Positions 2,861 through 36,940 of a stretch of DNA of 64,000 nucleotides are shown here, in pieces. The notes under the pieces were generated by a model. That model was given only the letters and a program-made list of their open reading frames with translations, did no database searches and was not told where the DNA came from. The position numbers and the translations under genes were made by a program. Each line of letters begins with the position of its first letter. The first letter of the stretch is position 1. The stretch lies in NCBI RefSeq assembly GCF_006345805.1, contig NW_021834310.1, positions 40,595 through 104,594 on the forward strand, read 5' to 3'. Origin of the DNA: Octopus sinensis. Its lineage: Eukaryota.

Positions 2861-3028
2861 ACTGCTGACACTTAATTAGCTATTTTGAAGGACTCTTTTT
2901 CTTTAAAAAAAAGTCAGAAATAATAATTGTCCTTGATCTATCAATAAAATAAGTTATTTTGACATTGATTGACATTGAGTAAATTTGATTGGTCGCGTCT
3001 AGCGCTCGGTCGCTCGGCTCGCGACATA

Positions 3029-3045
3029 TTACATGAGTCATGTAA
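3029..3045. promoter_or_regulatory. Palindrome TTACATGAGTCATGTAA with an AP-1-like TGAGTCA core
   Basis: Perfect 8 bp arms, next to a GC-rich patch and an ATTGG (inverse CCAAT). Conserved at 7773-7789. Function is inferred. Confidence 0.4.
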
Positions 3046-3378
3046 CATCACTCACAATTACAAATGAACAAACGGTAACGAAAAACTCGAAAATAGAATA
3101 AAAATTTTTAGTACTTAAAAAATGTTATGTTTATAAAAATGAAGAAAATTTCAGGCAATTTTACAAAATTGATGCCCCAAATGAAGGCTATACTGTATAT
3201 AAAAACTTAACTGGTCATGGGAAAACGACATAAGTTTTCTTTAATGGCGGATAACTAGACAATCAAGTTATGTTCTTTCTTAAATTTATTGGTCGTATTT
3301 TTACTGTGACGGTCTCCTTAAAATAATAATCGCTTGTAAATGTTTAGTATATATGCGAGTGAAAAAAAAGTTCAAAAA

Positions 3379-3421
3379 AGGAAGTAAAAAATAAAAAGGA
3401 AGTAAAAAATAAAAAGGAAGT
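3379..3421 (+). promoter_or_regulatory. Three AGGAAGT (ETS-site-like) motifs at 18 bp period
   Basis: Direct reading of the sequence. The sister copy has two (11110-11134). Confidence 0.4.
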
Positions 3422-3481
3422 ACCGAATGCTAGAACGTTTAAAACCAGGTATCCGTAATACGAAACAATTCAAAATCAGAA

Positions 3482-4090
3482 ATGAGTGTAAAACGAACAA
3501 TACTTTGGAAATTCATTGTCAATCTTTTAAAAACCAAAAACAAAGCAATTGAATAGAAAAATAAATCTATGGGAATATTTGTAATCACCGATGGAGATTT
3601 GTTGGCATATTGGTGGGGACAATGCAAACAAAACCCTTCCATGAATGAACAAAAACTTTCGAGGGCTCTCAGAACATACTACAAATATCCAAAAATTCTT
3701 AAAAAAGTACGTCATTCAAGAAATACCTACATGTTCCTCAATAGAAGAACAGAACAAATCCCAACACATATGTCACCGGAGCAGACTAAAGAAATAAATA
3801 TCCCCAATATGTCGTATCCCCAATACACTGTTCAGACAGAAGAAATCCAGCCACAAATCTGTCAGTTTTATATGCCATTTGAGGATCCGTATTATTCATA
3901 TTATGTGCCAAATATTTATTATCCGAATTATACATCATATGACTACAATTATTCTGAAGATTCAAATTGTCTCAATCGTTATTCAAAGGAATTGGATGAT
4001 ATTCTTTTTCCCCTCGAAAACGAATTTGGTTCTACAATTAATGACCAGGCTCTAACAGAACCAGATTTCTACACATCATACTATAAATAA
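3482..4090 (+). pseudogene. ETS-domain transcription factor, copy 1 (TAG at codon 25)
   Basis: ILWKFIVNLL...AIE*KNKSMGIF...WWGQCKQNPSMNEQKLSRALRTYY...ILKKV. TAG at 3554-3556 where copy 2 has TGG. Tyr/Pro-rich C-terminus. Confidence 0.85.
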
Positions 4091-4626
4091 TTTGTAATTT
4101 TGTTTATTAGCTTTTGTAATAAAATTTATTTATATTTTTCTAAAATATTAAAAATATTCAAAATTTTTGTAATATTGAACAAATTAGTAAGTTTAATCAA
4201 TTAATCGATTTTCTATATTTCCTTCCGAAAAAATAGTATTTTAATCAATATCTTAAATTCTAGAATTTATACAAAAAAGCAATTAGAACATTTTAATTTT
4301 AGAAAAATAAAATAAACATTTAAAGTACCAAAAAATGTTCAAAAATTAAATAAATATTTCAAAAAATATTTCAAAATGAGTAAAAGAAGTAAATTATAGT
4401 AATAAATTCGAAAAATATCACAAAATGATGAAATTTCAAATAATTTAATCATTAAAAGAAACTGCATCTCGAAATATTCCTACTAAATCCAATTACATAA
4501 AAAATTAAAAAAAGGGTTAACTACATAAAAAGCACCACAAGGTGAATCAACTGCGAGCTCACACGTGGAATAATTTATTGGGTTTACCATTAAAAATTAG
4601 GATAATTAAACAATAATTAATAAAAA

Positions 4627-5209
4627 CTGTTGACCCTTTCGGTCTGCACCCTTTATCGTGCAGGAGGAGTGCCGGACGTTTCCTGAGGCACTCTGCCATG
4701 AATGACATCATACGGAGGGCCCTCGACTCGGCGGGATTTCCTTTGGTCCTCGAACCACCGGGCCTTGACCGCGGCGATGGGAAACGCCCTGACGGGATGA
4801 TCCTTTTCCCCTTTGAAGGCGGAAAAGGCCTTGTTTGGGACGCAACCTGCTGCGACACCTTTTCTGCTTCTCACTTAACTTCGTGTGCCCTGGAGGCCAA
4901 ATCTACAGCTAAGAAGGCTGAAGATTTAAAGCTTTTAAAATATTCTGCCCTCTCGGAGAAGTTTTCCGTGGTGCCTATCGCGGCGGAGACGTCGGGTGCT
5001 CTCGGTCCAAAAACTGAAAAGTTCCTTCGCAAGCTCGGAGCCAAAATCTCAATGCGCACCCATGATCCTCGGGAGGCGAACTGGCTAATGCAACGGCTCT
5101 CGATTGCCATTATCCGGGGAAACAGTTTGGCAATCCGCCAGGCTACATATCCACCATAAACATAAAACTAATCTTTTAACATCTTAATGTTCCGATACTT
5201 TAAAAATAA
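4627..5209 (+). mobile_element. 5'-truncated CRE insertion with 12 bp TSD AATTAATAAAAA
   Basis: REL ORF at 4698-5159 (RPDG, WDATC). TSD at 4615-4626 and 5210-5221. Confidence 0.85.
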
Positions 5210-5289
5210 AATTAATAAAAAATAAACCATATTCTAATTACAACATTACCACAGTAATTCTGCAAATTTCGCAAAGAACTGCAGAGTCT

Positions 5290-5580
5290 GTATAATGCAG
5301 AGAGCCTTCACTGTTATCGGTAAGTTTTTTATATGCAATAACCAACTGGAGGATTAGTAACATCGACGTTTAGATCATTTAAAGAATCTGAGAGTTGAAT
5401 GCAATTGTTTGTTCTTTATTTGCTCCATCATGAAGTTCCTTTGCAATTCTCTCAGCATGTTTAAAAAAGATTCCCAGTTTTATAAATTGTATATTTGCGC
5501 TTGAGGTATTCCGTGATTGTGAGGAAATAGACCACTCCCGGGCAACTATCAGACACGCCACCAACGAAGATTCTTGTACT
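5290..5580 (-). mobile_element. R4/Dong-like relic
   Basis: Nucleotide similarity to about 54170-54400. Confidence 0.65.
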
Positions 5581-5778
5581 GGAGGACCGGTAAAAGTTTG
5601 ATTTTTTATTCATAATGTATTGGTGATGCAAATATAAAAAGATGAAGTCGAACGTTTGTGTTTAAAAAATTAAATAACGCTTTCAGTTTAATAAATAATT
5701 TAAGATAGTTAATTTAAAACTTATGATTGAATGTCACATAACCTGGATTGTTACTTTATACTCGGGATATATCATCAC

Positions 5779-7624
5779 TAGGGCAACCAATTGCAATTTT
5801 TTGCAATTAAATATAATTTAATTAAAATTCGATAAATAATAAAGTAATGAATAGACATTAATTTTAATTATATTTTTATTCGATTTAAATTTGCAATTTT
5901 TTGCAATTTTTTGTAGTCATTTTACAATTTTTGCAATTTTTTTAAATTAAAAAAAATTTTTTTATTAAAAAATAATATAATTATAAGTAAAGATTATTAA
6001 AACGTGTTTTAGTTGTTTGTTGTAATGGGTAAAAGGACAGTGTCACAGAAAATTTCATTTTATGCAAAGAAATTCCCCGAGTTTGTTATTGACAGTGAAG
6101 GGAATTTATTTTGCTCCAATTGCTCAACTGTTGTACGGTGTGACACAAAATTTTTTTTGTGATGCGCACCGTTCTTCAAAAAAACATTTAAAAGCACACA
6201 GTATTTCTTTGAATTTAAATTTATAGAATGGACAAATTCATCTCAGAGTTCACAAACATTTCTTTCGGCGATAACGGATACTCGAAAGGATTGGGGGATC
6301 AAAGTAACACAAGCGTTTTTTGAGGCAAACATACCAATTTATAAAATCAGACATCCTTCCCTCATACGGCTTTTTGAGCAGGAAACATATCCTTTGCCAT
6401 CTGAATCATCTTGCAGGTTAAATGTTAAAGAAATATCAAAATATAAAATTAATACCATTCAGACTCATTTACTGTTGTTTTTTTTAAGTTATTCAATAGT
6501 GGGGAATGTGTTTTTTTTTGTTTGTGATGAAGCCCAAATCAATGGAACTCGTTTTTTAATTACTTTGATTGGGAAAATCTCCACTCCAAAAAATCTTCAT
6601 TTAGTATCGTGTACCAATCTATATTATCCGCCTACTACTTCAACAATTTGTGTTGAGGTGGACAAAGTAATAAAGAAATTTTCTATTGAACGTGAAAATT
6701 TTATATTATTCGTTACAGATGGGGCGAGATATATGACCAGTGGTATATATAAATAAATTTAATTTTAGCTGGGGCATCAATGAAATTGATATACCAAAAT
6801 CTTTTCCACGTGACTTGCGTGTCACATTTATTGCACAACTGTGCTCTAAAGATTAAGGCATACTTCGCAGATGTTGATGAATTGATTTCGTCTATAAAGG
6901 CTGCCACAGTCAAAAACAGAGACGTTTGGAGATGTTTTCACGAATCGGAAATCCACCCGAAGTTGTGGTTACAAGATGGGGAAGCTGGCTAAAAGCAGCA
7001 AAATATTACTCCCAGAATCTTCCAGAAATTATTAAAATCGCATCTGAATTTGAAGGAGATGGAGTTTTAATACAAAATGTTTTAGTTTTTAATTATTTTA
7101 GGCAAAAAAATCAGTGAATAATCCTACGTTGTTTCCAAGCTTAACCCAAATCAGTTCAAATTATTTGGGATTAATTGAAATGATTTCAAATACTGAATTG
7201 CTTGATTACTCCATTGCAACAGCTTATGGTGATCTAAACACCCTAGACTTTACATCAGATCCATGCGACATAAAATCCTATATATCAAAAAGCTTGAGAA
7301 ATCAGGAATACTAAGTATTCTTGAATTCTCAAATAAGAATCTATCGCCAGAAGTTTATTCACATCTCAGAAAATGTAGCGCAAGTTCAGCATCTATCGAA
7401 AGGGAAATATCTCTTTTGACGAAAATTCTTAGTAAAGAGAGGAACTTTAAACCTGAAAATGTTCAGGAATATTTGATTTCCTATTACAATAAATAATTTC
7501 GTTAATTTTTTGCATAATGTAATGTTTACAATTAAAAAAAAATTATTTTTGCAATTTTTTACAATTTTTAAAATTCATTTTTGCAATTTTTTTTATTAAA
7601 AAGTGCAATTTTTTGGTTGCCCTA
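5779..7624 (+). mobile_element. hAT transposon, CGGBP1-like family A, full length with TIRs
   Basis: TIRs TAGGGCAACCAA (5779-5790) and TTGGTTGCCCTA (7613-7624), with TTGCAATTTTT subterminal repeats. No matching TSD. Confidence 0.9.
6025..7496 (+). pseudogene. hAT transposase with three tiny introns (6201-6226, 6743-6768, 7079-7101) and about three single-base frameshifts
   Basis: Motifs CSNC...HRSSKKH, AFFEANIP, VTDGARYM, FHVTCVSHLLHNC, TRWGSW and SSASIER. Removing each GT-AG intron restores the frame. Confidence 0.8.
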
Positions 7625-7925
7625 TTAATTAGCTATTTTGAAGAACTCTTTTTCTTTTAAAAAAAAGTCAGAAATAATAATTGTCCTTGATCTATCAATA
7701 AAATAAGTTATTTTGACATTGAGTAAATTTGATTGGTCGCGTCTAGCGCCCGGTCGCTCGGCTCGCGACATATTACATGAGTCATGTAACATCACTCACA
7801 ATTACAAATGAACAAACAGTAACGAAAAACTCGAAAATAGAATAAAAATTTTTAGTACTTAAAAAATGTTATGTTATAAAAATGAAGAAAATTTCAGGCA
7901 ATTTTACAAAATTGATGCCCCAAAT

Positions 7926-10912
7926 TTGGTTGAGGTGGTGACGTGCCTCTATTGCACCAATGTCTTTCTCACACTTGATATCTGCTGGCCCGTTCTCAAT
8001 TGGCACTCTAACGTTAGAGGACTCAATCCCATGTATAAACAACTTCAACTCACAAGAGATTTGGAACAACGCAAGGTGTCCATCTGCTGCTTACAAGAGA
8101 CGAAAATAACTGAACATGGAAGCTCGAAGATAGGCGATTACACACTAATTACCCTCCCAACTACCTGTCGTCACTACGGCCTTGGGTTTGCAATCAACAG
8201 AAAACTGGACGACACATATCCGGGTGTGGTCCGTCTCGGACAGGATTGCGGTACTCCAAATCAAATGGGGAACGAAACCGAACTCCTCGTCACAATCATT
8301 AATGTGTACGCGCCAACTGGAGTCAGAGCCCTTGCTAATCCGGATGAACTTGATGAATTCTATTCCACTCTCACAAATTTATACAACACACTCAGATCCT
8401 CGTATACGTGTTTCATTGCTGGTGATTGGAACGCCAGAGCAGGGAAAGCCAGGCCCGGAGAAACATGCATAGGATCCCATGGAAGAAACCGGAGAATGTG
8501 CCTGGAACTGCCTTGATCCAATTCTGCACCTATTTAGACCTATTCTTATGCAACACGGCATTCCGTCATCCAGCCAGGCACAAAACACACATGGACTGGA
8601 ACCAGAAAGGACTCAAATGGAAATTACATACCTATATTCAATCAAATAGACTACATCCTCTGCAAAGCTGCCCATAAACATCTACTTGTGGATTCACGTT
8701 CATACGGGGACTGGAGACAAATAGTGACCACAAACTAGTAATCACTAGCATCGGACTGTACAAGACATACAACAAACTGAAAAAACTTACGCATGATGAA
8801 CAAGAAAGCTATAATCTTGAATTATTCCGTGATGAAAAACTCAAACAGACTATGCAGACAAACTACAGGAAGAACTCGACAATATTGACACAACAAAACC
8901 TGCAAATGCGATTTGGGATGCAGTGACCAGTGCAATGAAGAAGACAGCTGTAAATGTTGTTGGACTCACTCGAAAAAAACACAAATTTCACGATAACGAG
9001 ATTTGCTCCCTCTCAGAAAGGCAGAAAACCTTGAGGTTAAAAATACAAAACTCCAGCAACCCGAAAAAAATAAGAGAACTCCGAAAATTACGGAACATGA
9101 TATTACTAAATATCAAGAAAACACAGAAATTGCTAATGTACAAAGAAACAGAAGAGCAATTTCAACACATAACAAAACAAAAGGACGACACGAAAATGTT
9201 CATGGCAATGAGGCTGCTAAGCAAAAAAAAGAGGCAAAATTCGATCACTGTCTGGGACACCACGGAAGCGGCTATCATTGACAACAAGAGTAAGGTAGAG
9301 GCTATATCTGAATACTACTACAAAATGCTTAACTGGGAGGATGAATCAGGATACAAACCCTACCCATATACTGTAGGGGCACTAAGTTCCCCATTAACCA
9401 CTTACGAAATATGGAGGCAATGAAGAAACTGAAAACCGGCAGGTCTGGGGGACCGGACAATATCCCACCTGAACTAGTAAAATATGCGCCAATGAAGTTT
9501 GCTGAAATCGCTGCAAATATCCTGAACAAGGCATTTGAGCAGAACAACCCATTAGACCTCGGCAAAGGATGGTTAATTCCTCTACAGAAACCTGGAAAAC
9601 AAAAAGGACCCCTATCCAGCCTAAGACCTATTATTTTGCTAACGACGCTTCGGAAAACACTGTCGTTGATCGCATTAGAGAGGATAAGAACCAAGGTGGA
9701 AAACTTTCTGTCACCGGGACAAAGTGGCTTTAGAACTGGCAGGTCCACTGCTGATGTGATCTGGACTCACAGATGGACAGCTGCACATGCCAAAATATAA
9801 ACATTGCACTGAAATACTCGGCATCGATATGTCCAGAGCATTCGACTCTGTTCACAGAACTAAACTTGTGGAAATACTTATGACCTTCTTAAATCATGAC
9901 GACATCAGAATAATCCTAATGCTTCTTCAGAACACTCAATTAGCAACCAAACTTGGTAAAAATGTGTCAAACTATTTCTACACATCACGGGGCATACCAC
10001 AAGGCGATTCGCTGTCCCCAGTTCTCTTTATCGTCTACCTAGAGGCAGCACTCAGAGACTTTCGGCCTCTTGTGGACAACACTAAATACAACGAAATAAT
10101 ATATGCTGATGATGTCGACTTCGTATCTGATGATGCTGAAACCCTTCGATTTATTATCGAAACATTACCAGATATTTTTTCCAAATGGTTTCTAACAATC
10201 AACCACAATAAAACTGAACATACGAAATTTATTCGATCTGAACGAACTCATGATGAGCCCTGGAGAAGACAAAAAAAAGTCGGATCTCTCTTAGGGGACT
10301 CTGAAGACATTATGCACAGAAAAATACTATCAATTGCCACATACAATAAGTTTATGAACATCTGGCGCCTAAAGAAGCTAAATTCAAAGACAAAACTTAA
10401 AATATACAACACATTTGTTGTCCCAGTCCTAATGTACAATGGATCGACGTGGGGAATCAGTAAGACCGATATGAACAATTTGGACCGATTTCATCGGAAC
10501 CAACTGAGAAGAGTGATAAACATGCAATTCTCAAGGAAAATAGCAAATTCCACCCTATACAAAAGATGCAATTCGAGACCGATCTCTATGGACATCCTGG
10601 AGTCCAGATGGCGACTCTTTGGACACATATTAAGACTTGACAGCCTCACTCCGCCGAATATCGCGATGGAAAACTACTTTGCCCATTCCAAAGGAGACTT
10701 CCGTGGAAGACCCAGGGTCACTCTGGCTACCACGCTAAATGAAGATCTAGCTGGAATTAATAAAAAACTGAAAAATGGCGATGATCTCGACTCACTCAGG
10801 ACGATCGCAACTGACCGGAGAGCCTGGAGACGCATGACCGGGAGAATTTCAATGGTGGCACAAGGAAAGCTTAATTAACTTATGACTTTTCCGAAAGTGC
10901 TTTATAATATAA
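7926..10912 (+). mobile_element. Near full-length RTE-like LINE (APE endonuclease plus RT), frameshifted, 8 bp TSD CCCCAAAT
   Basis: EN motifs LQETK, INVYAPT and GDWNA. RT motifs GIDMSRAFDS, GIPQGDSLSP and YADD. TSD at 7918-7925 and 10913-10920, with an empty site near 3175-3182. Confidence 0.92.
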
Positions 10913-11194
10913 CCCCAAATGGAGGTTATACTGTATATAAAAACTTACTGGTCATTGGAAAAACGACATAATTTTCTTTATGGCGCGATAACTAGACAAT
11001 CTATGTTCTTTCTTAATTTATTGGTCGTATTTTTACTGTGACGGTCCTCCTTAAAAAGTAATCGCTTGTAAATGTTTAGTATATTTGCGAGTGAAAAAAA
11101 GTTCAAAAAAGGAAGTAAAAAATAAAAAGGAAGTACCGAATACTAGAACGTTTAAAACCAGGTATCCGTAATACGAAACAATTCAAAATCAGAA

Positions 11195-11800
11195 ATGGGT
11201 GTAAAACGAACAATACTTTGGAAATTCATTGTCAATCTTTTAAAAACCAAAAACAAAGCAATTGAATGGAAAAATAAATCTATGGGAATATTTGTAATCA
11301 CCGATGGAGATTTGTTGGCATATTGGTGGGGACAATGCAAACAAAACCCTTCCATGAATGAACAAAAACTTTCGAGGGCTCTCAGAACATACTACAAATA
11401 TCCAAAAATTCTTAAAAAAGTACGTCATTCAAGAAATACCTACATGTTCCTCAATAGAAGAACAGAACAAATCCCAACACATATGTCACCGGAGCAGACT
11501 GAAGAAATAAATATCCCCAATATGTCGTATCCCCATACACTGTTCAGACAGAAGAAATCCAGCCACAAATCTGTCAGTTTTATATGCCATTTGAGGATCC
11601 GTATTATTCTATATGTGCCAAATATTTATTATCGAATTATACATCATATGACTACAATTATTCTGAAGATTCAAATTGTCTCAATCGTTATTCAAAGGAT
11701 TGGATGATATTCTTTTTCCCCTCGAAAACGAATTTGGTTCTACAATTAATGACCAGGCTCTAACAGAACCAGATTTCTACACACATCATACTATAAATAA
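11195..11800 (+). CDS. ETS-domain transcription factor, copy 2 (ETS domain intact, C-terminus frameshifted)
   Basis: ORF 11195-11707 contains the complete ETS domain. A 1 bp deletion near 11536 relative to copy 1 shifts the frame. Confidence 0.8.
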
Positions 11801-12332
11801 TTTGTAATTTTGTTTATTAGCTTTTGTAATAAAATTATTTATATTTTTCTAAAATATTAAAAATATTCAAATTTTTGTAATATTGAACAAATTAGTAAGT
11901 TTAATCAATTAATCGATTTTCTATATTTCCTTCCGAAAAAATAGTATTTTAGTCAATATCTTAAATTCTAGAATTTATACAAAAAGCAATTAGAACATTT
12001 TAATTTTAGAAAAATAAAATAAATATTTAAAGTACCAAAAAATGTTCAAAAATTAAATAAATATTTCAAAAAATATTTCAAAATGAGTAAAAGAAGAAAT
12101 TATAGGAATAAATTCGAAAAATATCACAAAATGATGAAATTTCAAATAATTTAATCATTAAAAGAAACTGCATCTCGAAATATTCCTACTAAATCCAATT
12201 ACATAAAAATTCAAAAAAAAAGTTAACTACATAAAAAGCATCACAAGGTGAATCAACTGCGAGCTCACACGTGGAATAATTTATTGGGTTTACCATTAAA
12301 AATTAGGATAATTAAACAATAATTAATAAAAA

Positions 12333-12913
12333 CTGTTGACCCTTTCGGTCTGCACCCTTTACCGTGCAGGAGGAGTGCCGGACGTTTCCCGAGGCACTCT
12401 GCCATGAATGACATCATACGGAGGGCCCTCGACTCGGCGGGATTTCCTTTGGTCCTCGAACCACCGGGCCTTGACCGCGGCGATGGGAAACGCCCTGACG
12501 GGATGATCCTTTTCTCCTTTGAAGGCGGAAAAGGCCTTGTTTGGGACGCAACCTGCTGCGACACCTTTTCTGCTTCTCACTTAACTTCGTGTGCCCTGGA
12601 GGCCAATCTACAGCTAAGAAGGCTGAAGATTTAAAGCTTTTAAAATATTCTGCCCTCTCGGAGAAGTTTTCGTGGTGCCTATCGCGGCGGAGACGTCGGG
12701 TGCTCTCGGTCCAAAAACTGAAAAGTTCCTTCGCAAGCTCGGAGCCAAAATCTCAATGCGCACCCATAATCCTCGGGAGGCGAACTGGCTAATGCAACGG
12801 CTCTCGATTGCCATTATCCGGGAAAACAGTTTGGCAATCCGCCAGGCTACATATCCACCATAAACATAAAACTAATCTTTTAGCATCTTAATGTTCCGAT
12901 ACTTTAAAAATAA
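12333..12913 (+). mobile_element. Duplicate of the 5'-truncated CRE (frameshifted)
   Basis: Near-identical to 4627-5209, with the same TSD. Confidence 0.85.
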
Positions 12914-12990
12914 AATTAATAAAAAATAAACCATATTCTAATTACAACATTACCACAGTAATTCTGCAAATTTCGCAAAGAACTGCAGAG

Positions 12991-13690
12991 TCAGACACTT
13001 GGTTAATGTACCTATTGTATTAACATGCGATGGGCTGGTTACTCAAAAATTCCTACAATCTGCACGTTTGGATCGATCAGGCCTTTTTGGGAGGTCATCA
13101 GAATCTCTATAAGCAGATTGTGCTCCTCATGTCCGCCTCGTTATTCTGGACTTTCGTATTTGTATTTATTGTTGTATCGATACGAATCTTCACAGAGTAA
13201 TTCACACTCTTAGACTAAAAGAATAAATTTTCAACCTTCGATTTCGTAATTCCATAGTACCTGCACAACATAGTTTACTGTGTCCTTGTAAATAGTCACT
13301 ATTTAGCATTCGATCACACTTTGTCGCCAAATGATCAACCGTCTTCTTGACTGAGTTACGGTGACTGCACATTATTCCGGCATTATAAACAAATAGAATA
13401 CTTTTCTGTATAAAGCAGAGAGCCTTCACTGTTATCGGTAAGTTTTTTCTATGCAATAACCAACTGGAGGATTAACAACATCTACGTTTAGATCATTTAA
13501 AGAATCTGAGAGTTGAATGCAATTGTTTGTTCTTTATTTGCTCCATCATGAAGTTCCTTTGCAATTCTCTCAGCATGTTTAAAAAAGATTCCCAGTTTTA
13601 TAAATTGTATATTTGCGCTTGAGGTATTCCGTGATTGTGAGGAAATAGACCACTCCCGGGCAACTATCAGACACACGCCACCAACGAAGA
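12991..13690. mobile_element. R4/Dong-like relic fragments in both orientations
   Basis: VPIVLTCDGLV on the + strand. CSHRNSVKKTVDHLATKCDRMLNSDY on the - strand. Confidence 0.75.
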
Positions 13691-14779
13691 TTCTTGTACT
13701 GGAGGACCGGTAAAAGTTTGATTTTTTATTCATGTATTGGTGATGCAAATATAAAAAGATGAAGTCGAACGTTTGTTTAAAAAATTAAATAACGCTTTCA
13801 GTTTAATAAATAATTTAAGATAGTTAATTTAAAACTTATGATTGAATGTCACATAACCTGGATTGTTACTTTATACTCGGGATATATCATCACTGAAGAC
13901 GATAGTCGGGTAATGACGAGGTTAGGATGTTAGATGGTGTCATACTTTCTGACACTGTTGTCAAAATTCACTAGGTTGTCACAACCCAATAATTGGTTTA
14001 TTTGTCGACAAATATTGGACTTGGGCTGATTTGTTCGCTCCCGTTCAGATCTCACATAGATATTCGGGAAAGATTATTTAATGTATAAAGTGTACAAAAT
14101 GGAGCATCAATGAATTCTTAGGATAAGTGCATATTTGGTTTAATGTATAAAGTGTACAAAATGGGGCACCATTGGAATTTGAATAGTGGCGTACATCAAC
14201 TCAATCAAAAAGATAACTGATATTAGAATACATACTTACTATCATTCTCTCACTGTATATGCTCTATTGGTGTTATACTCGGTCGAGTGTTCATAAGTCG
14301 TCTTACAAGACATTGTGGACAAGACCTGAGCACAATCATAACTTCATCTCCGCAAGATTCATAGACTAAATTCTTTAAAAGAGAAGAAACCTATAAAGAA
14401 AAAGATGTCCATTATCAAGGTGAACATTTACAACAAATATCCTCTCTGTTCATCTTCTCATACAACGAACACATGCAAAAGAATTTCACTTGTTTTGAAA
14501 AAAATAGTTGATCCGGCAAGGAGTTCGTAAAAATCGTAAATATCCCTTCCGCGAATGTTGATATGTCGCCCAGACAGGTCACACTTTTTTTATAAAAAGA
14601 ACAAGACAGAAAGAGAACATGTTACTAAGGAACTAACTAATCCAAAAAATCATGTGTCTCTTCTGCTTCATCTTGTTCTCCCTTCCCCTTTTTTTGTTGT
14701 ATGGCCAATTAAGACATCCGGTTGATTGATTTTTTTCATTAAAAAATTATTGACAGTTCGTTTACGGATCGTATTTAAC

Positions 14780-16030
14780 CGAGCACATTAAAGAAATTTA
14801 TTCATAATAGATTCCTTTGCTCTTTGTATTAATAAAGATTCCTCTTCTATGCCATTGCAAATATTTAAGATTTCTGTTACATTTTTTGCATAATAGCAGA
14901 ATTTAACCGACTGCCCCATTTAGTAACATTGGGCTTGGGTGGATTCCCAATTTCTGTAAATAATTGACGTCGTGAATTATTTTTACAAGTGCTTTGACGC
15001 ACGATATTAATTTACAGTCCTATGAATTTTTAGCAGTCACTAAATTTTGACCCATGCATATGTTCCGGACCAGTGATTAACAGCATCAAAAAACAACTTT
15101 ATTCAATGAAAATATCTTATTTGAAAAAATAATTAATAATTAATTCCACCTCCTTTATTCTTTACAACATCGATCATCCTATTTGGAAGTGATTTATAGA
15201 GATTTTCTATATGAGCATCTTCTATTTTATCCCATTTTGTTTTTGTAATTTCCAGAGTTCCTGGAGATCTTCTGGTTCTTTTTACATATTCTTTGTTTAA
15301 GAATATAGGAGAGGTTTTCAATAATGTTTAAATGTACATCAGAAATATGTAAATAAATTTTTTTCATATTAACATTGAGTTTGAGGATGCCGTCATCAAT
15401 AATATGAAATATAATCGCGGAATTGGGAGCTGTATTAATTGCAATACAATTAATTAAAAATCTTTTATTAATTCTTTGACGTTCCAATAAGAAACTTAAT
15501 ATACTTCTCTATTCTATGACCATCTTCGTCAATTATTAAAACAATTTGTTCACTTGAAACTGTTAATAATTTGTGAAACCATTCTTTCATCGAGAAATGT
15601 AACAGTGTCTCAGCATTTGGTTTCCGAAGGAACAGAATGTCCATATTTATTTTAGAAAATTGGTGAATTTCGTAACTTATGAAGTGAAATGTTTGCTGAT
15701 GAAAATGTATTTACAAGATCCATGAAAAAAAAACAGCAGTAACGTCATTTTTACTGTGAGTATCCATAATATTATTCGTGTTTGGGATTCTCAGAATATG
15801 ATTTTTGGAATGTCTATGCTTATCGATAAATCATTTCCTATTAGCAGTTACGTAAGAATTACATAATTTGCGGAATAAATTTCCATCCAATGAAGATGAA
15901 ACTCCTTAGATATTTATTAACAATAGAAGAAATTTGCTTAGTGATAGAACCCTGTTTTTAGGCATTGTAAAAAGCAATAAACAAAATTTAAATTTAACTT
16001 GTTTCCAATATTTTCTTTTTTGTTGGTGTC
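14780..16030 (-). mobile_element. Fragments of hAT family B interleaved with a Tc1 3' end (about 15010-15320)
   Basis: Nucleotide similarity to 52760-53220 and 59300-59610. ORF 15133-15321 reads KWDKI...IENLYKSLPNRMIDVVKNKGGGINY, a Tc1 C-terminus. Confidence 0.7.
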
Positions 16031-20830: not shown

Positions 20831-21661
20831 ATCATTTTAGATATATTTGAGATTTTTCAAGATAGTGAGCCTTCAAAGGCAGAAGGACACATGAAAAAAG
20901 AGAATACTAAGATTTGGTTTGACTGTAATTTGAAAGTGGGAAAGAATCTTTCGGAACAAAAAGGATAACCGTGGAACATAAAGATGTTAACGAAGTAAGA
21001 TAATTTAAAAAAGCAAAACTGCTCAGAAACTCTACATAACCTCCAATCAACAGGAACAATCGTCCAAACGTTCAAAGAAGAACGTCAAGTCACGCTTAAG
21101 CAATGCAAAGTATATAACATCATCACAGCTTTATGTAAGAACAATTTTGATGAACGTTCTCTCAGGGCAAATTTTAGAAATGATCCTAAGAAGACTAGCT
21201 TTAAAATTGATGATGAAAAACAATTTCTATGAACGTTCTCTCAAAGCAAATTTTAGAAATGATCCCTAGAAGTATAGCTTTAAAATTACGCAGAAGAAGA
21301 AAAATTTTTATTTAAAAAGAGGCTGTTAGTAGAGAATAGATAAGGACCTTTGACATTCCTGCCTTTTTAGTCCCGGACACACGCTCACTTCTCAGCCGCA
21401 AACTAAGACTTACCGCCTTACCTGGTACCCAGACATTATCTTCTCTAGGACCTTAGATAGACCTTTGAAGGACAATTCCTGGGTTTCCGAGTGCTCCTCT
21501 CGCCATCCTTAGCCATGGGCTAGCCGGCTAGCTTGTCTTCTGACTTTCTTGAGTGCGCTAATTAAATTGATAACGCGTTTCGTCTTTTCATATTTAAGTA
21601 TAAAAATTGACAGCAGGCAAATTAGTTTATTAAATTAGTTCATTAAATTACGAATACTCGA

Positions 21662-22101
21662 ATGAAAGTAGTCATTACTGGTTCCAAAAGGTAATGTCTC
21701 TTGTCTACTGTAGTGGAATGGGCTACTCCACTGATATAAACTCTTAGTGGGAAGTGATCCTTCCCGCCATCTCATCATTGCCTGTAGAAATGTACAGAAA
21801 GGCTTGGAAGCCGTCAGTTCTCTCAGACAAAACAACCAACATGTCAAAAAAGCCTGTCCTCATAGACATGGTCTCCCGACTGTCCATTTTCAGGGGTGTG
21901 AATTATATTAAAACACAGTACTCATTCCCCACAGCCAGAAAAAACCATCTGGACGGGCTTATATCCAATGAAGAAACCACGGGCACGTGTCACGTGGTCT
22001 GGAGTCATTGCATAAAAAACTTATTTTCACCGTATTCTGCCCTAAAAAAGTCCAGAAACGTGTTTGATATGTTTTCGACAAGCAAACGACTGTTCTGTTA
22101 A
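21662..22101 (+). pseudogene. Short-chain dehydrogenase/reductase (SDR) 5' part with a 23 nt intron (21691-21713)
   Basis: The spliced sequence reads MKVVITGSKSGMGYS (TGxxxGxG), then HLIIACRNVQKGLEAV and HLDGLISN. Frameshifted. Confidence 0.8.
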
Positions 22102-23362
22102 CAGACTGGGTTCATAGCTTGTAGTCTGGAGATCCCGCCAGGAGAGAGAGAGTTTAAAATATATTGAAATTCTTGTTGAATTATTGGATAGTTTGGCATG
22201 ATTTGATTGTTTTAATTTTATTACTTTGTATGTGAAATAAGAGTGTAATTAACATATCGTGTCATTAAAGAAAAGGCAGCAGAATCTAGTGAAATTAATT
22301 CAGAGCTTAATGTTTTTCGTCAAAATAATAAACCAAATTAATCCTTCTTCGAATCTTCGTTATTTTAAATAGATTTCTTGTTAAGAAATAAATTGAAAAT
22401 TTATTTGAATTATCATCATGTAATTTGAAAAAGTAAAACGTTTCGTAGTGAAATTGGCTTACGGAGACAACTTGAGGAAGTTTTGAAAACTCTCAAAGTA
22501 TCCTCTGCGCCCACAATCCCGATGATCCTGAAGGAAATCTGTATTTGATCACTATAATGGCGTGTACACTGAAAGAGTGACTTCGGTGCTTTGTTTTTAT
22601 CTTTCGTTAACGATTTCTCCTTTTTCGTAGATTTTGTTTTTTGGACAATAAAAACAATTCTATTCCAAGGATTTTTAAAAATCAAGTTAAATAATCAATT
22701 ATCGAATTATAACTTATATATTTTCTAAAAATATTATTTTTTGAAATGAATAAAAATATCGAATTATTATCAATAGCGTGTTCTGCACGCTTTCCTGTTG
22801 TTGTGTGTTTTGTTTTTGTACGTTGATTATTACTTTTATTCAAATTTTTAAAGTATAATTTTCTATTTGCATTTTATTGCTGATTAAATATTTGTACATG
22901 TAGAATACCTTGAAAAAAGTTATTTTACAAGTTAATTGTGGCTATTGCCTCACTAGTTTAATCTCAATTTAATGCATCTTTTTTAATTGATTTTTTTCTC
23001 TATGTATATATTCATTTTTATTGATATTTCATGATTTATCAACTTATTGTATTTTTCTTTGATCAAAATTTGATTAAATCTGTAAAATATTACTTTTTAA
23101 TCTCTTTATTATTCACAATTCTTAAATCTTTGTAAATTATTATTATTGTAATTTGAATCATTATTGTTATATTTTTTTTCTAGATTTTTTTAAACTGAAC
23201 ACGAATTTAATTATTGTTATATTATTTTTATAAATTATTATGTCACAGGCTTAGTGTGTACCGAGCCTAGGTGGTTATACTTTGGACTTTTTTTTAGACT
23301 TGGAAAAAAATTCAAAAAAATATTTGAATTCTATTTCAAAATCTATTTTGTCAAGATAAATG

Positions 23363-24076
23363 TTATAAAATGACCTCGGGGACGAAAGATGCCAAGGAGA
23401 CATTTCGTAACCGTTAATCGCGTAAGCATGCTCGAGACATTTCAAGAGACAAAGGTCGTCTACAGGCGGATTATACCAACAGGGAGGAACGGCGACCGTA
23501 AAGTCTAACGTATCAGGCTGTTTAGAAGGCTCTAATGACTTAGGGGACAAATCTATCGTAATGAGGTAACGGGACTTCTGCGCAGAATCTTTTCTTGTGC
23601 GATAATCAAAGCACCCTTTGAGATATTAAGCGCATCGCACATTACCTCTACGGATCTTTCTTATTTCTATGTCTCCGAATTTTGCTTTCATATCGAAGGT
23701 ATAGTTCATTAGAAAAATTGCAAGGCTTGACGTAACCAAATCCTGGTTGAAATCAACCATTCGATTAAGAGTGTTTATAATTGCACGCTCGTTTTTAGTG
23801 TATTATATTTCAACTCTACCAAGAACGGCCGATACTCACGGGCGAATGTCCCAACCTCCATCTTCACATTCATATTGAGTAGTATTGGCCCGGCTCCCAT
23901 ATATATTTTCTGGTATTCAGGATTTTCCCATCTTCAGGGTTTGGCTTCAAGAATTCTCCGAGAGGTATAGTTCTTGGTTTATTTTCTTCACCTTCCTTTA
24001 GGCATTGTACTTTCATTATTTGCTGATATTCCACATCTCCTATCGATTCACGCATTTCTTCTTGAAAATTTTTCAT
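23363..24076 (-). pseudogene. Orphan gene, copy 1 (indels)
   Basis: Duplicate of 44180-44897. Confidence 0.55.
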
Positions 24077-24119
24077 TTATATTTTCACAAACTCTTTATA
24101 CAACTTCGAGGTAATTAGT

Positions 24120-25349
24120 CTCTTTTTTTTGACACTCTTAAATCCATCGACGCCCATGTGGCTTTCTTCCTACTGAAGAACTTTCTTGCCTTTCCTCGTT
24201 TGGAGTACGCACTTCGCACTTCTCCCTGTTTCCGATTCCCGGATGCAGTCGGAGAATTCGATTCGCTGCTCAGGAATACTCTCGTTCAAATCTCAAACGT
24301 ACATTTTGACGAAATGGGCTGGAACAGGCTATCCTGCATATCAGGCACGGGGGTCTCGGATTCCAAGCGCCCTCGGTCCTCTCCTTGCCATGTTTTCTTT
24401 CCTCCTCTCACCGATGCATGCCTCTCGTAGTCCAGATCCTTCCTCCTCCCTCTGGATCGCTCACGGACTCAGAGCTTTCATACGGCACATCGTTGTGGAC
24501 AGATTGCGGACTAAAAACTCCCGTTGACCTATGCCTTATGCGCGAATGGACGGAGATCAGCAGCCTTCAGTCTTTCCGGTACTTACTGTCTCACGGAGAC
24601 CAACACCGGCGTGCTTGTCTGTTGTCTGGAGCATCTCCACGGACTGGCGCTGGATCAACGCCTATCCTTCCCCCGCAGCTGGAACCTTCCTGGACCCAGA
24701 CTGTTTAAGAATCGGAATATCTCTCCGACTCGGCTTGGACATTTGCCAGCTTCACCAATGCCGTTGCGGGGCTCATATAGACCGCAAAGGTCTACACCCG
24801 CTCTCTCCTGCCGCAAATGCCCTGGGAGGTTCCCCAGGCACGGACAGCTTAATTCCATAATAAAGCGTCTGCTCGAGGCAACCGGCATCCCGTGCCAGCT
24901 GGAGCCCTCTGGCCTTAACAGGGCGATGGCAAGAGGCCGGACGGCGTCTCGCTCTTCCCGTTCAAGTGCGGCAAAGCGATCGTCTGGGACGCGACATGCT
25001 CTGACACTTTTGCGTCAACATGCCTTCTCGCGTCCGCGATCGAAGCTGGCACAGCGGCGAGGAGGGCAGAGACCCGGAAGAGAAAGACAAGTACGCCTCG
25101 CTCGCCGACAGATTCCTCTTTGTGCCTGTTTCAGTCGAAACATCAGGCACATTCGGCCCAGCCACGCTACGTTTTCTCACCGAGAGAGGTTGTCACCTCG
25201 GGAGGATTAGAAACGACCCCCGTGAGGTCAATCGGCTTTTTGAGCGCGTCTCAATAGCCGTACTCAGGGGGAACAGTTTCTCTATTCTCTCTGCGGCTAG
25301 TAGCTGACTTCTTGTTCCATTTCTTTTCTAGCTAAATAATAAAAAAAAT
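24120..25349 (+). mobile_element. 5'-truncated CRE, 8 bp TSD TAATTAGT (frameshifted copy)
   Basis: Duplicate of 44941-46170. TSD at 24112-24119 and 25350-25357. Confidence 0.85.
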
Positions 25350-25352
25350 TAA

Positions 25353-28200
25353 TTAGTTATTTATTTTTTTTGCTTGCGCGTTCCCGCGCACGATTGCGAG
25401 TGAGATCCTCTGCCTCAACCAAGAGGACTCGCGAGCATCCATCTTCTTCCGAGCGATGAGGATACCGAGGTCTTTTAGGTAGCATGAGGTCTGCGGGCCG
25501 GAAGCGCCTGATGTCTCAAGAGCCACAGGCACGCGAAGGAATGCCGAGTGGCAAGATTCTTGTACTTTTCCACTTTGCGGGCTTCCGCCACGGCCGCGAC
25601 AGAGCCGAGAACGGAACGGGAGAAGCGAGACGGATCGTGTAGAGCGGATGGGGACCCGTGTCTGCGCACGTGGCGTCCCAGATCAGGCAATTGCCATTCC
25701 GGAATGGGAAGGTGGTCATCCCGTCCGGGCGTTTGCCGTCCCCTCTGTCCAATCCAACTGGTTCAAGCACGTTGGGGAAGCCAGCAGCGTTGAGAGCTCT
25801 TGAAATTACGTCGTTGATTGCTCCATGGCGAGGCGAGCGGCCTGCGCTCCGGCGGCAGGAGAGGGGGTGAAGGCCTTTCACGTCCACCGTACCTCCGCAT
25901 CGACAGGGATGAGAGGCGCAGACATCGAGCCCCAGCCGAAGAGCGACCCCAATGCGCAGTGTTTCGTTGTCCAATAGGGAACCCGTCGATGACGTTGGGT
26001 AAGCGTCGAGCCAAGATCCACTATGCTCGTGTGCTGCCGAAAGCAGGCACGCCAGCCGGTGTTGGTCTAGCTCTGGTTTCATCTTCGAAAACGAGTCGGC
26101 GGCCCATATTTCATCCCATTCACGTTGCACAGACATGTCGGACGGGAGGGGTAGGTGTTTAGCGTCAGTCCAGAATTCCAGAAGGTCGGCAGTCGGCAAC
26201 CAGAGAGAGTTCGTTGAAGGGGAGTAGAACCTCTCGGACAAGTTGCCGGTTTCTGGAAATTGAAGAGAAGTGTGCATGTGGAGCCAGATCTTTTGGCGAG
26301 CGAAGACCGATCCCACCAAACCTGACGGGAAGTTTCGCTTGAGTCCAGCCGATTTCGTCAAAAGAGATGTTCAGGACTGCTTCCGTGCAAGATTTCAGTG
26401 ATTTTTCCAAGTGAGTCAAAGTGTCTGGATGCGAGTAGCATGGCAGGCAGCGGAGCGTGTAAAGAAGTTTCGGCATGTGTATGCTGTTTTTCATAAGGAA
26501 GAAAGCGATGTGTGAGTCTAACTCCAAGAGACTGCTGTGAGGTGGGTTACGGAATTCAGAGTCCTTCTTCGCCAGATGGGCCTTTAGGCCAGATGGGGTT
26601 AAAGGGCATCCAAGGAAGGTTGCTTCTGATGGCTGGATTGTTTGTGCACCAGCGATGAAGCCTTGAATTGTCATGTTGACATTCGGAAAATCCGCCTCAG
26701 GGTAGTTGAGGTTTAGGATTTCCGATTTATCCACGTTAACGTTCAGTCCAAGGTTGCGCAAAGAAGGGATTAGGCGGGATAGGTCCTCGGTGATGGATTC
26801 AACTGAGCCGCCAATGGTGGCGTCGTCCAGGTACCATAAATTGAATGGTGAGAGGATTGACCGTACAGCCTCGTCGATTGCTAAGGCGAATAGTAATGGT
26901 CCAAGAGGGGCCTTGTTGGACTCCTGTTCGAGAACGGATGACTTTATCCCCAAAGATAAGTGAGGTGTCTTCCCCGTACGAGAGGAGACAAGCTGGGAAA
27001 TCTCCGGAGCCCTCTCGACGCATACCTCCATTATACGGTCCCTCCTGACGCTGTTGAAGGCATTACGCAGATCGAGTTTGACAGCCATGTGACGATGAAG
27101 TAGAGCGTCCTTTGAAAGAAAGAGAGTTCGGGCCGCGTGTACGCAGCTTCACAGCCGTTTGGGATCCCGACTCCCAGTTGAAGTGGAGCTAGTTCGGTGC
27201 TGAGGCGTAGACTGGCGTGTCGTGCGGCAGCTTTAGCGGCAAGCCGGCGGAACAAGTTGCCAACAGCGATCGGACGAATACCTCCGTCCTTTTTTCTGAA
27301 TGCCAGTAGATGAGACGAGAAAAGTAGCTTCATAGCAAAATTCGGGATGTTCCCGCTCAGCAACCGGTTTATAAGTGTGTTGATGGCAGTGAGTAGAGTT
27401 GGCCTGCCTCGCCTGTCGTTTGAGAAATAAGGTCTTTTAGGTGCCCTGGGCGTAGTCCGTCTAGGCCCCCACAGCTGCTTTTCCCGAAAGATTGAATTGA
27501 TCGTTTGACTTCCTCGTTGGTCAGAGTCAGAACTGGGATGTCTCTTGGGCGTTCAAGGGTCGGAGGTCGACGGGAGGGTCTGGATGTTTGGTTTTCAGTT
27601 TGTCGAGAACGTCGGGAGTTGGAAGTAAGACCGTGTCGTCGTTCATGACAGTGCGGATAGCAGCTCGGATGTCGCCTTCGGCCAGCTTGCTACTGACACG
27701 TTCACTCAAGTCCCGCCGGAGTTGTAGTCCGGGTTAGGGTGCTTGTTGTCATTCTTCGTGTGGGTGTGTGAAGGACAAGTTTGCGGGAGAAATCTTTGGT
27801 AGAGAGAAAATTTTGCTGATGTTCTGTTTGATTCGTGAGGAGAGAGGTTGTGGATTTTTTTCAGTGCGAAACTGAGTCCCGAGGGTCAGAGGGGCAAAGC
27901 TGATGAAGCGGGTCCATGCTTCCCAAGTATTCAACAGAAGCGTATCGTTGATAACAGTTGACAGGCACATAGCTGTTTGTATGCGGGCAGATTTAGGAAT
28001 TCGGAGAGGGATTTTTAGAGACCGGCGAAAACACGATAATTCGACGAGGAAGGAGTCCACGTTTTCGAATGAGTTACTGGCCGTTGTGGGCATGGTCTGG
28101 TGGTTAGTGAGTATAGGCCCAGAACGGTGGGGAGGGGGAGAAAGCAGACAGGAGAGCAAAGCCATCTAGTGATTGCCGAGGCGGCTTTCTTGCTGATTTT
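25353..28200 (-). mobile_element. CRE retrotransposon (frameshifted copy)
   Basis: Duplicate of 46174-48990 with many single-base indels. Confidence 0.9.
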
Positions 28201-29070
28201 GAGAAAACTTTTTCACTTAAATTACATATAGGAATTTAAATCATGATTTTACTGCTTATAATGGATGGCTTTATAAATTCAAGAAACAATTCGAAATTAT
28301 ATTCAGAATAAAGCTTTCAAGAATCCTCTGTGCCCACGATCCGGATGGTCTTGGAGAAAAGTTGTCGGCACTGACTATAATTGAAGATACGCAATGAAAG
28401 AGACACTTCGGTCCTCGTTTAATCTCCCCATTAAGGATCTTTTCTTTTTTCTTTCGGTTTCTGTTTTTGATCAATAACGACATTCCATTCAGAATAATAC
28501 ATTGCGAATCACGATCAGTTGATATAGGAAGAGCGGAAAACATCCGATCGACTTTTAATAATTTGTTTGAAAACTATGGCCGAGAAGACATTTTCAACTG
28601 TGATGAAACTTCAAAAAGCTGTTTTCAAAAAGAGTTTTGTTGAGAGAAATGAGCCACAAACATTACATAAAATAATAAAAGAACGTATGACAACTTCTTT
28701 TGTGTTGCATTTACACAGGAGAAAAATATAAACCACTTATAATTGGGCGTAAAAAGTCACCAAGAGTAAAGGTGTGAATCTGAAATAAATCGATATTGAA
28801 TATGATGTTTTGTGTCAAAGTCTGAATGACAAAAAAACTCTTACCACTCACATCACACAGGATAACTCGACACAGAGACCATAAAATTTTATTATTTCTA
28901 TGATAAAAATCCTGCAGCACAAATTGATGATGTGATAAAAAGATCACAATATTGGATGTTATTTTATGTTCAAAATTGACATGGGAAAAGATTCCAGATA
29001 CTTTAATACAACATTGATTTGAAAAAGCTTTGGAATATGACTGTCGGCAAACAGAAAATATCTGAAAAAG
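28200..29070 (+). mobile_element. pogo/Tigger transposase relic
   Basis: DFTAYNGWLYKFKK (CENP-B-type HTH), DIFNCDET and EKYKPLIIG. Confidence 0.75.
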
Positions 29071-29178
29071 TCTGATTGATTCGGATATTGTGGAAAAAGT
29101 GACTTTGGAGAGTTACTGGGTTGATAATAGTAGTGAAGAGGACTGCTGTGAACAATTTCCGACACTTATCCAAAATCT

Positions 29179-29653
29179 TCAGAGACACTCCCTCAACGAA
29201 GAGGGCTGACCAACTTCAGTAGGCAGAAACAACCTTTCTATTAACATATTAAACTCCGCTCTCCTCTCCAAAGCATTAATCTGGTCTTCTATAGCAACTC
29301 GTCTTGATAATTTCAGTTTCTGTTGACTCAGTAAGGCATCTCTTTCACTATCCTTGAAACTTGTTACTTTAGTCTCTGCTCTTCCTAGTTTTTCTGCATT
29401 AATATTATTCAAAGTGTCTTTCTACACACGAATAAGTCGATTCTAACACAACCAATCTCATTTCTGTCTGTATGAGACTCAGCTCAGATTCTTTCTCTGC
29501 TTGCATTACCAGTTTCGCTATCTCTTCAGTCGTTTCCTCTCTCTGCTGTGATAGTTTACTCAATCTTTTTAGCTGATCTTTCTTTTTTTGACTTTTAATA
29601 GTCTGATTAAATGGTTTGATTTTGTTGGGTAAGTAAATTAGCAAAAATTTCAA
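29179..29653 (-). pseudogene. Coiled-coil protein fragment, weakly tropomyosin-like
   Basis: Two E/K/Q-rich ORFs joined by a frameshift, with RLVVLES and ERRAEF motifs. Duplicated at 49960-50463. Confidence 0.35.
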
Positions 29654-29829
29654 ATTAACCGACTTATTATCACTATCTAATTCTGGAAAAATGGTTTCGA
29701 TGTTGGACGAATTGGAAACAATTTACTCCTTCAGTGCGCCAATAATTCCGTTTGACTCTTTGAAGCGTTTTTTGGCCTTCTGGAGGCCACTGCTTTCCAA
29801 AATTCTTGATTATTTAAAAGATTCTTAAA

Positions 29830-36750: not shown

Positions 36751-36940
36751 TTAACCAAGAAATGTAACAATGTCTCTGCATTTGGTTTCCGAAGGAACAG
36801 AATGTCCATATTTATTAAAAAATCAATAATTGATGTATTTCGTAACTTATGAAGTGGAATGTTTGCTGATAAAAATGCATTTGCAAGATCCACTTTGGAA
36901 CTCCTGTTTAAAGGCATTGTAAAAAAGCAGTCAACAAAAA

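Follow-up and report, generated by a model that had tools for sequence, protein, structure and literature searches.

A complete hAT transposon at the junction of a candidate tandem duplication carrying an ETS-domain gene in Octopus sinensis

We analyzed the last 64 kb of Octopus sinensis contig VCDQ01008156.1 (104,594 bp; assembly GCA_006345805.1), a stretch that we call the window and whose position 1 is position 40,595 of the record. In this window, a segment that carries an open reading frame (ORF) for an ETS-domain protein is present in two copies, termed units 1a and 1b, and a complete transposon of the hAT superfamily occupies the entire gap between them, flush on both sides. We propose, giving it about an even chance, that this arrangement is a real tandem duplication that would have arisen through one aberrant hAT transposition of the hybrid element insertion (HEI) type, with a hAT-free homologous chromosome as the target. 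The geometry of the locus, the identity of the hAT, the target-site consensus, the absence of footprints, and the divergence between the units are all observed in the assembled sequence.

Results

Borders and junctions of the tandem units

Comparison of units 1a and 1b by BLAST gave three collinear blocks (2872-3182 = 7625-7925, 3175-5288 = 10913-12992, and 5287-5778 = 13405-13893). The units are direct repeats, exactly two in number, and they share 2.9 kb at ~97% identity; a chance resemblance or a mis-called repeat is ruled out by this extent of identity, by the collinearity of the three blocks, and by the base-exact boundaries. The window contains no N, and no assembly gap separates the units. 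The homology begins with the base that follows the right terminal inverted repeat (TIR) of the transposon (positions 2872 and 7625, preceded by C at 2871 and by A at 7624) and ends with the base that precedes the left TIR (positions 5778 and 13893), the following base being T in both cases, which is a chance match. The coordinates that the original prediction had assigned to the two units and to the hAT all held to the base in this comparison.

The 8-mers flanking the hAT differ, with ATCATCAC on the left and TTAATTAG on the right, and the junction copy has no matching target site duplication (TSD). Each of the two 8-mers has one twin, located at an outer border of the duplication. With a slash marking the border, the outer left junction reads ...CTGCTGACAC/TTAATTAGCTATTTTG and the inner right junction ...GGTTGCCCTA/TTAATTAGCTATTTTG, while the inner left junction reads ...GGGATATATCATCAC/TAGGGCAACC and the outer right junction ...GGGATATATCATCAC/TGAAGACGAT. 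At the outer borders, we found neither hAT sequence nor a second, footprint-like copy of either 8-mer. An earlier claim, that the flanks do not form a TSD and that each recurs at a transposon-free outer end, is thereby confirmed, both 8-mers having been located at the borders.

Both flanking 8-mers fit the consensus nTnnnnAn, which is fitted by 10.3% of the 8-mers in the window (a background of 0.103), and the chance that both would fit it is ~1%. Because both 8-mers, as well as the TSD of an ordinary hAT located at 38582-40001, fit nTnnnnAn, the two junctions look transposase made. From these sequences, it appears that transposase made the joints between the two hAT ends and the flanks they now have, each at a different target site.

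The junction element

Judged by its sequence, the junction element belongs to a hAT family and is full length. Its TIRs are perfect over 12 bp (TAGGGCAACCAA) and begin with TAGGG, which fits YARNG, the terminal consensus of hAT elements; the only exact matches to TAGGGCAACCAA in the window are these two TIRs. The element also contains subterminal repeats of TGCAATTTTT, four on the left and three on the right, so that seven of the nine occurrences in the window lie close to the hAT ends, within 165 bp on the left and 75 bp on the right, with ~1 occurrence expected by chance window-wide.

The transposase coding region (6025-7496) has ~5 frameshifts, zero substitution-type stops, and no intact ORF as assembled; the frameshifts may be consensus indel errors. 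The stitched transposase has 460 amino acids (aa) and aligns over 95 to 100% of the length with proteins of 450 to 465 aa (E ~1e-110, 40 to 43% identity). It matches DUF659 with E = 2.6e-7, which is under the Pfam gathering score, and among its full-length relatives DUF659 was found in 17 of 18 and the hAT dimerization domain (PF05699) in 8 of 18. The invariant motifs DE, D(G/A)A-YM, CxxHLLHN, TRWGSW, and ERxxS are retained in the window transposase. Pfam searches with the separate ORF pieces gave no match, only the stitched protein and the family being informative, and the family profile retrieved no transposase from the PDB sequences, just a weak match to a U1-type zinc finger. The TIRs, the transposase family, and the DUF659/PF05699 assignments agree in supporting the call of a hAT element made in the original prediction.

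No near-identical relatives of the hAT or of the ETS protein were found among the protein collections searched, and no other copy of the junction hAT family was seen in the ~98 kb inspected. We considered three nearby hAT-like sequences (14791-15011, 31572-32491, and 52384-53227) as possible partners of the junction element and rejected them as belonging to another family, because their protein identity to it is just 40 to 47%. This second, DUF659-type family is on the reverse strand at all three places, one of which (14791-15011) is a small fragment ~900 bp to the right of unit 1b. Relatives of ~460 aa are common on ~2-kb contigs in metagenome and Logan assemblies, one being labeled as coming from a Fusobacteriaceae metagenome-assembled genome; the likeliest explanation of such sequences is that environmental or contaminated data sets include eukaryotic transposons.

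Routes to the observed arrangement

Several ways of placing a transposon between two repeats were rejected. An insertion of the hAT at the joint of a preexisting duplication fails because a matching 8-bp TSD would be expected, and none is present. In the reversed-ends transposition (RET) of maize Ac, each repeat begins with the transposon and two copies are expected, while unequal crossover, i.e., nonallelic homologous recombination (NAHR), between two insertions in cis leaves three transposon copies (PMC3744419). Exactly two tandem direct repeats and a junction element without a matched TSD, as found here, are features of RET; nevertheless, RET and NAHR in cis both fail because only one element is present in the region and the outer borders are free of elements and footprints. 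We also rejected a macrotransposon made of the hAT and the duplicated segment (U) and using a cryptic second end, since the far ends of U (CTATTTTGAAGG... and ...CTCGGGATAT) are unlike the TIR. The original prediction had invoked either alternative transposition of the maize Ac kind or unequal crossover between two hAT insertions. Its transposase-made junction is retained here, and the sister-chromatid form of transposition that it mentioned fits when the target is a hAT-free homologue, but the maize-type RET and the crossover in cis do not, with one element and no footprints.

In HEI, the ends that are used come from copies on sister chromatids or homologues (PMC2775673). We worked through the product topologies for one element, with the left end taken from one sister chromatid and the right end from the other. 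When the target is on the rejoined sister, the product has the observed junction plus a TSD-footprint-TSD at one outer border, and the latter is not seen; when the target is on the hAT-free homologous chromatid, the viable orientation yields exactly the observed structure. As is characteristic of HEI, the junction holds a single element that is flush on both sides and whose flanks match the far outer borders of the copies.

We propose the following sequence of steps. A compact, autonomous-type hAT would first have inserted normally at one border of the ~3.3-kb segment U, creating an 8-bp TSD there. After replication, transposase would have brought together the left end from one sister chromatid and the right end from its sister, and the hAT-free homologous chromatid would have received this hybrid element at a second nTnnnnAn site, which borders U on its other side, ~3.3 kb from the first. 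The predicted monocentric product is X-TTAATTAG-U-ATCATCAC-[hAT]-TTAATTAG-U'-ATCATCAC-Y, in which one hAT flank would be the old TSD, the other flank would be half of the new TSD, and both outer borders would be untouched empty sites. The predicted reciprocal product is X-TTAATTAG-[hAT]-ATCATCAC-Y, a deletion of U. Since U and U' would come from different homologues, they would differ at the allelic level from the outset, so that insertion into the homologue would explain both the allelic-level divergence and the private structural variants of the units without added time. The order of events, the use of ends on sister chromatids, and the homologue as the target are what we infer.

Differences between the units and quality of the consensus

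Units 1a and 1b differ by 31 substitutions in 2,862 aligned bases (1.08%), among which 25 are transitions, and the substitutions are evenly spread along the unit (index of dispersion, 1.0). There are also 29 indel events, 23 of them consisting of bases missing from unit 1b. Each copy has one private structural change, namely, the insertion of a long interspersed nuclear element (LINE) in unit 1b and a 412-bp deletion in unit 1a. The LINE is bordered by the TSD CCCCAAAT (7918-7925 and 10913-10920), with the empty site at 3175-3182 in unit 1a, and the 8-bp overlap of the first two BLAST blocks corresponds to this TSD. The 412-bp segment is ancestral in unit 1b and was deleted from unit 1a, because the homology to a retroelement copy at 32999-33602 runs through the 13404/13405 joint of unit 1b. 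An even, transition-biased divergence of 1.08%, together with private structural variants, is compatible with two homologues, with an old duplication, or with an assembly artifact.

Fragments related to the retroelement C-terminal domain found in unit 1a, a domain which we take to be endonuclease-like, are located at 1000-1470, 2700-2871, 12404-12863, and 25516-26361 (reverse strand) and have the motif ...WD.TC.D.... The left border of the duplication (2872) coincides with the truncated 3' side of the fragment at 2700-2871. We rejected the idea that U had inserted into this fragment, as the sequence past 13893 does not resume that element.

The consensus of the contig was evaluated on a second tandem duplication in the window (e.g., 21414-22710 versus 40355-41659), in which segments of 1,307 bp and 426 bp carry 10 and 9 indels, respectively, and 0 substitutions. 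Because these segments have indels without any substitution, most small indels in VCDQ01008156.1 appear to be consensus errors and not mutations, and the contig appears to contain many uncorrected errors of this kind, ~0.3% per copy. With indel errors so frequent, neither the hAT transposase nor the ETS ORF of unit 1b is likely to be truly frameshifted, while the substitutions between units 1a and 1b are probably real. Frameshifts in the ORFs of this contig are no safe sign of pseudogenization without a read check.

The ETS-domain gene and its paralogue

The ETS ORF is composed of a single exon, and the ETS domain corresponds to its first 85 residues. In unit 1b, the domain matches PF00178 with E = 4e-20 over profile positions 2 to 80 of 81 (Pfam). 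Its best solved relatives are ELF2, ERF, SPDEF, and ERG (~1e-12 to 1e-13), and the recognition-helix sequence LSRALR is retained. Neither copy is intact as assembled: the in-frame TAG of unit 1a replaces Trp25 (TGG) of unit 1b and of the paralogue described below, and the ORF of unit 1b contains, downstream of the domain, five frameshifting indels of 1 to 2 bp in short runs; compared with unit 1a, these are four deletions and one insertion. The claim of a duplicated transcription factor gene is therefore supported as far as a real ETS-domain ORF is concerned, but both of its copies are disrupted in the assembly.

An exhaustive HMMER search revealed one close relative, the first 121 residues of XP_029654503.1, from contig VCDQ01009621.1 of the same assembly; all remaining ETS proteins were distant, with ≤50% identity in the domain. 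The ETS ORF of this paralogue is intact (181 aa), and the two loci, that of the window and the paralogous one (L002), have ~1 kb in common at ~89% identity. Between the paralogue and the window ETS sequence, the ratio of nonsynonymous to synonymous substitution rates (dN/dS) is 0.20 for the domain and 0.34 for the whole ORF (dS = 0.24), and these ratios indicate that the ETS family has been under purifying selection. The RefSeq protein XP_029654503.1 (1,141 aa, annotated as uncharacterized, LOC115227957; L002 10001-18035) fuses the ETS domain with the reverse transcriptase/endonuclease ORF of a retrotransposon. Since the stand-alone ETS ORF is intact there, this protein is probably a chimera of the ETS gene and the adjoining transposon.

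Copies of GGAAGT, an ETS core-site motif, precede the ORF at each locus: in addition to the three in unit 1a, there are two in unit 1b (11111 and 11129, extending to 11134) and two in the paralogue (L002 9927-9942). We consider these motifs to be putative ETS binding sites, and the presence of the repeats before every copy of the ETS ORF suggests autoregulation, with a number of sites that differs among the copies.

Other features of the window

The coordinates of the features of the duplicated locus are collected in Table 1. The second tandem duplication (21414-40354 and 40355-64000, copies 2a and 2b) has a period of ~18.9 kb and extends to the end of the contig. Its copies differ by 86 to 88 substitutions in ~16.6 kb and by 107 small indels, and the substitutions are distributed very unevenly, with 0 in the first 3,253 bp, ~59 within 28224-29514, and ~0.2% in the rest. 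No transposon end is found at its junction (40354/40355). Two Helitron-like 1.85-kb elements, 41660-43515 (forward strand) and 59648-61498 (reverse strand), are present in copy 2b and absent from copy 2a; both occupy a site between A and T, have TC at the start and, after a GC-rich palindrome, CTAG at the end, and contain internal tandem repeats of 94 bp, 102 bp, and 118 bp. A Helitron-like copy with 95% identity lies beside the paralogous ETS gene on the other contig (L002 13521-15408). The third 1.85-kb difference between copies 2b and 2a, at 57571-59421, includes 46 copies of a 29-bp satellite (57926-59268). Since sequence homologous to 15471-15722 continues across the right edge of this difference, it may reflect a loss from copy 2a instead of a gain by copy 2b. 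Four large differences are located at or inside the duplications, and their lengths (1,846, 1,856, 1,851, and 1,851 bp) are oddly close.

The hAT at 38582-40001 is a nonautonomous element of another family than that of the junction, with TIRs CGGGGGTGTCAAAG.../...GTTTGACACCCCTG and a perfect 8-bp TSD, GTCTATAG, that fits nTnnnnAn. Its left part recurs in copy 2b (62398-62815), where it is interrupted at TA by a pogo/Tigger-like element (62816-64000), and a 95% copy of its transposase remnant is located at 2247-2699, just left of unit 1a. A gene for the U3 small nucleolar RNA (21018-21202, reverse strand; Rfam RF00012, 66 bits, full length) lies ~200 bp to the left of the start of the second duplication.

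Table 1. Features of the duplicated locus, in window coordinates
Feature	Position	Strand	Remarks
Unit 1a	2872..5778	+	2,907 bp; private 412-bp deletion at 5288/5289
TTAATTAG, outer left border	2872..2879	.	Single copy after CTGACAC; no transposon, no footprint; fits nTnnnnAn
GGAAGT (ETS core-site) motifs, three	3380..3421	+	18- to 19-bp tandem repeat, ~60 bp upstream of the ETS start codon, unit 1a
ETS-domain ORF, unit 1a	3482..4090	+	202 codons; in-frame TAG at 3554-3556
Retroelement C-terminal domain fragment	4698..5159	+	Inside unit 1a; no Pfam match
ATCATCAC, hAT left flank	5771..5778	.	Fits nTnnnnAn
Complete compact hAT	5779..7624	+	1,846 bp; TIRs at 5779-5790 and 7613-7624
Unit 1b	7625..13893	+	6,269 bp; ~3,274 bp minus the LINE
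TTAATTAG, hAT right flank	7625..7632	.	Twin of the outer left border 8-mer
LINE (non-long-terminal-repeat retrotransposon)	7926..10912	+	2,987 bp; apurinic/apyrimidinic (AP) endonuclease and reverse transcriptase domains; unit 1b only
ETS-domain ORF, unit 1b	11195..11800	+	ETS domain intact, Trp25 present
412-bp segment	12993..13404	+	In unit 1b, absent from unit 1a
ATCATCAC, outer right border	13886..13893	.	Single copy, then TGAAGACG; no transposon, no footprint

Discussion

Three routes fit the locus: HEI into a hAT-free homologue, recombination of two insertions present in trans, and an assembler that walked from one haplotype into the other. HEI takes one prior insertion and one event, whereas the two rivals in trans take two independent insertions of the same family within ~3 to 6 kb. 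Several points weigh against HEI. The duplication is known from the assembled sequence alone, and it lies on a small contig (104.6 kb) of poor consensus, in which whole segments have indels and zero substitutions and which has a second tandem duplication running to its end. The assembly, a PacBio/Hi-C assembly, has 5.2% duplicated BUSCOs, compared with 0.5% for O. vulgaris and 0.4% for O. bimaculoides, and its chromosome-scale scaffolds hold only 86% of the sequence (PMC10700109). The divergence of the units comes near the 1.22% heterozygosity reported for the sister species O. vulgaris (PMC10700109), as tandem-assembled haplotypes would equally predict. The documented hAT forms are the sister-chromatid transposition and RET of maize, in which two elements are involved (RET, PMC3744419), and HEI is known experimentally from Drosophila P elements. 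Neither sequence that might have served as an outgroup for the borders does so: the paralogous L002 locus (core, 3315-4262, and part of 4680-4869) reaches neither border, and the 6.4 kb upstream of the window hold nothing related.

The assembly artifact would require a hAT insertion at the right border of U in haplotype A and another at the left border in haplotype B, with the assembler walking X-U(A)-hAT-U(B)-Y. We regard this scenario, which the original prediction had itself named as its refutation, as less likely than HEI but not improbable. It predicts the identical sequence, clean outer empty sites included, and a divergence such as that observed. The private LINE and the private deletion resemble ordinary heterozygous structural variants, the duplicated BUSCOs are ~10 times those of related octopus assemblies, and the 1.85-kb hAT could be an assembly-graph node shared by two haplotype paths. 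The abundance of consensus indels (29 versus 31 substitutions, most of them missing from unit 1b) is what half-depth or poorly polished sequence would give, and the indel-only segments of the second duplication, the poor consensus and small size of the contig, and the very presence of that duplication point the same way. On the other hand, the artifact requires two independent insertions in trans, of the same family and orientation and ~3 to 6 kb apart, each with the other site pristine, and the ~98 kb examined hold no other copy of the family; moreover, a 1.85-kb repeat is far below the typical PacBio read length and should be spanned. A real duplication by NAHR within the hAT, between insertions on the two homologues, would end in a geometry and an allelic-level divergence identical to those of the other two routes, but we consider it very improbable, as it combines the same unlikely pair of insertions with a rare crossover in 1.85 kb of misaligned homology (NAHR frequencies of 1e-4 to 1e-6 are quoted in PMC3744419). 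HEI into the rejoined sister chromatid is improbable as well. It gives an identical junction, and the Poisson-like substitutions along the unit are as for a single divergence time, with the 1.08% divergence, the LINE, and the 412-bp deletion all arising later in an old duplication; however, its footprint would have had to be erased by a deletion of at least 8 bp that cleanly removed the second TSD copy, and perfect TIRs and a transposase with frameshifts but no substitution-type stops are less expected of an old event. We give the least credence of all to an event of the maize Ac/fAc RET type, or a crossover in cis between two hATs, with subsequent loss of the outer element or elements. A tandem direct duplication with a hAT at the junction is a documented outcome of RET, but the borders CTGACAC/TTAATTAG and ATCATCAC/TGAAGACG, with no element or footprint, would imply footprint-free loss once or twice.

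The locus is thus a good candidate for a duplication of the hybrid element type, a known kind of event that is rarely seen in natural animal genomes. The assembly is known to contain false duplications. Tandem duplications are usually ascribed to unequal recombination or replication errors, and most of the direct proof that cut-and-paste transposases make them was obtained with maize Ac and in Drosophila P-element crosses. At somewhat less than even confidence, we suggest that an active compact hAT (1.85 kb, ~460 aa) in Octopus sinensis may duplicate genes by HEI between homologues and may have copied a member of a small, octopus-specific, fast-evolving ETS gene family along with its GGAAGT-repeat promoter. 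If so, the locus would be a sequence-resolved natural animal example of a transposase-made tandem duplication, with the full signature (one element lying flush between the copies, a TSD that is split, and empty sites that are clean), and a transposase process would contribute to the growth of gene families in cephalopods, a group noted for genomes with tandem gene expansions. If the locus is an artifact, it warns that heterozygous transposon insertions can make an assembler set two alleles in tandem, with a junction that seems biological.

Compared with known members of the hAT superfamily (Ac, hobo, Hermes, and Tam3), the junction element is alike in the TAGGG start of its TIRs, its nTnnnnAn flanks, and its subterminal repeats, as well as in the C-terminal dimerization domain, the RNase H-like DUF659 region, and the conserved D, D, CxxH, RW, and ERxFS motifs of its transposase. 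Unlike them, it is very compact, with 1.85 kb and a transposase of ~460 aa, and the N-terminal zinc finger of its family resembles the U1/zf-met type and not BED; the family has no significant sequence match to solved hAT transposases. The locus resembles a false heterotype duplication (Ko et al. 2022, PMC9516828) in that the divergence between the adjacent copies is about as large as the heterozygosity and in that duplicated BUSCOs are in excess in the assembly. It differs in having no gap and in a junction that consists of a complete transposon with exact transposase-type joints, unlike an arbitrary mis-join.

With maize RET, the locus has in common the hAT superfamily, the two repeats, a transposon that is flush at the junction and lacks a matching TSD, an 8-bp target common to the junction and a border, and a transposon-free border without a footprint; RET involves two neighboring elements, in contrast to the single element found here, where both outer borders are transposon-free. 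Hybrid element insertion of Drosophila P elements was reportedly described by Gray, Tanaka, and Sved in 1996 and by Preston, Sved, and Engels in the same year (both cited in PMC3744419). It concerns an unrelated transposase, despite the 8-bp TSD that P elements and hATs both have, and it was seen in dysgenic crosses, unlike the wild animal assembly studied here, for which the reciprocal product is a prediction only. P-element HEI is otherwise a close parallel to our locus, since the element is retained at its site and ends from different chromatids are inserted nearby. The flank is thereby duplicated in tandem, and a reciprocal deletion is formed; the duplicated copies abut the element exactly and come from different chromatids or homologues.

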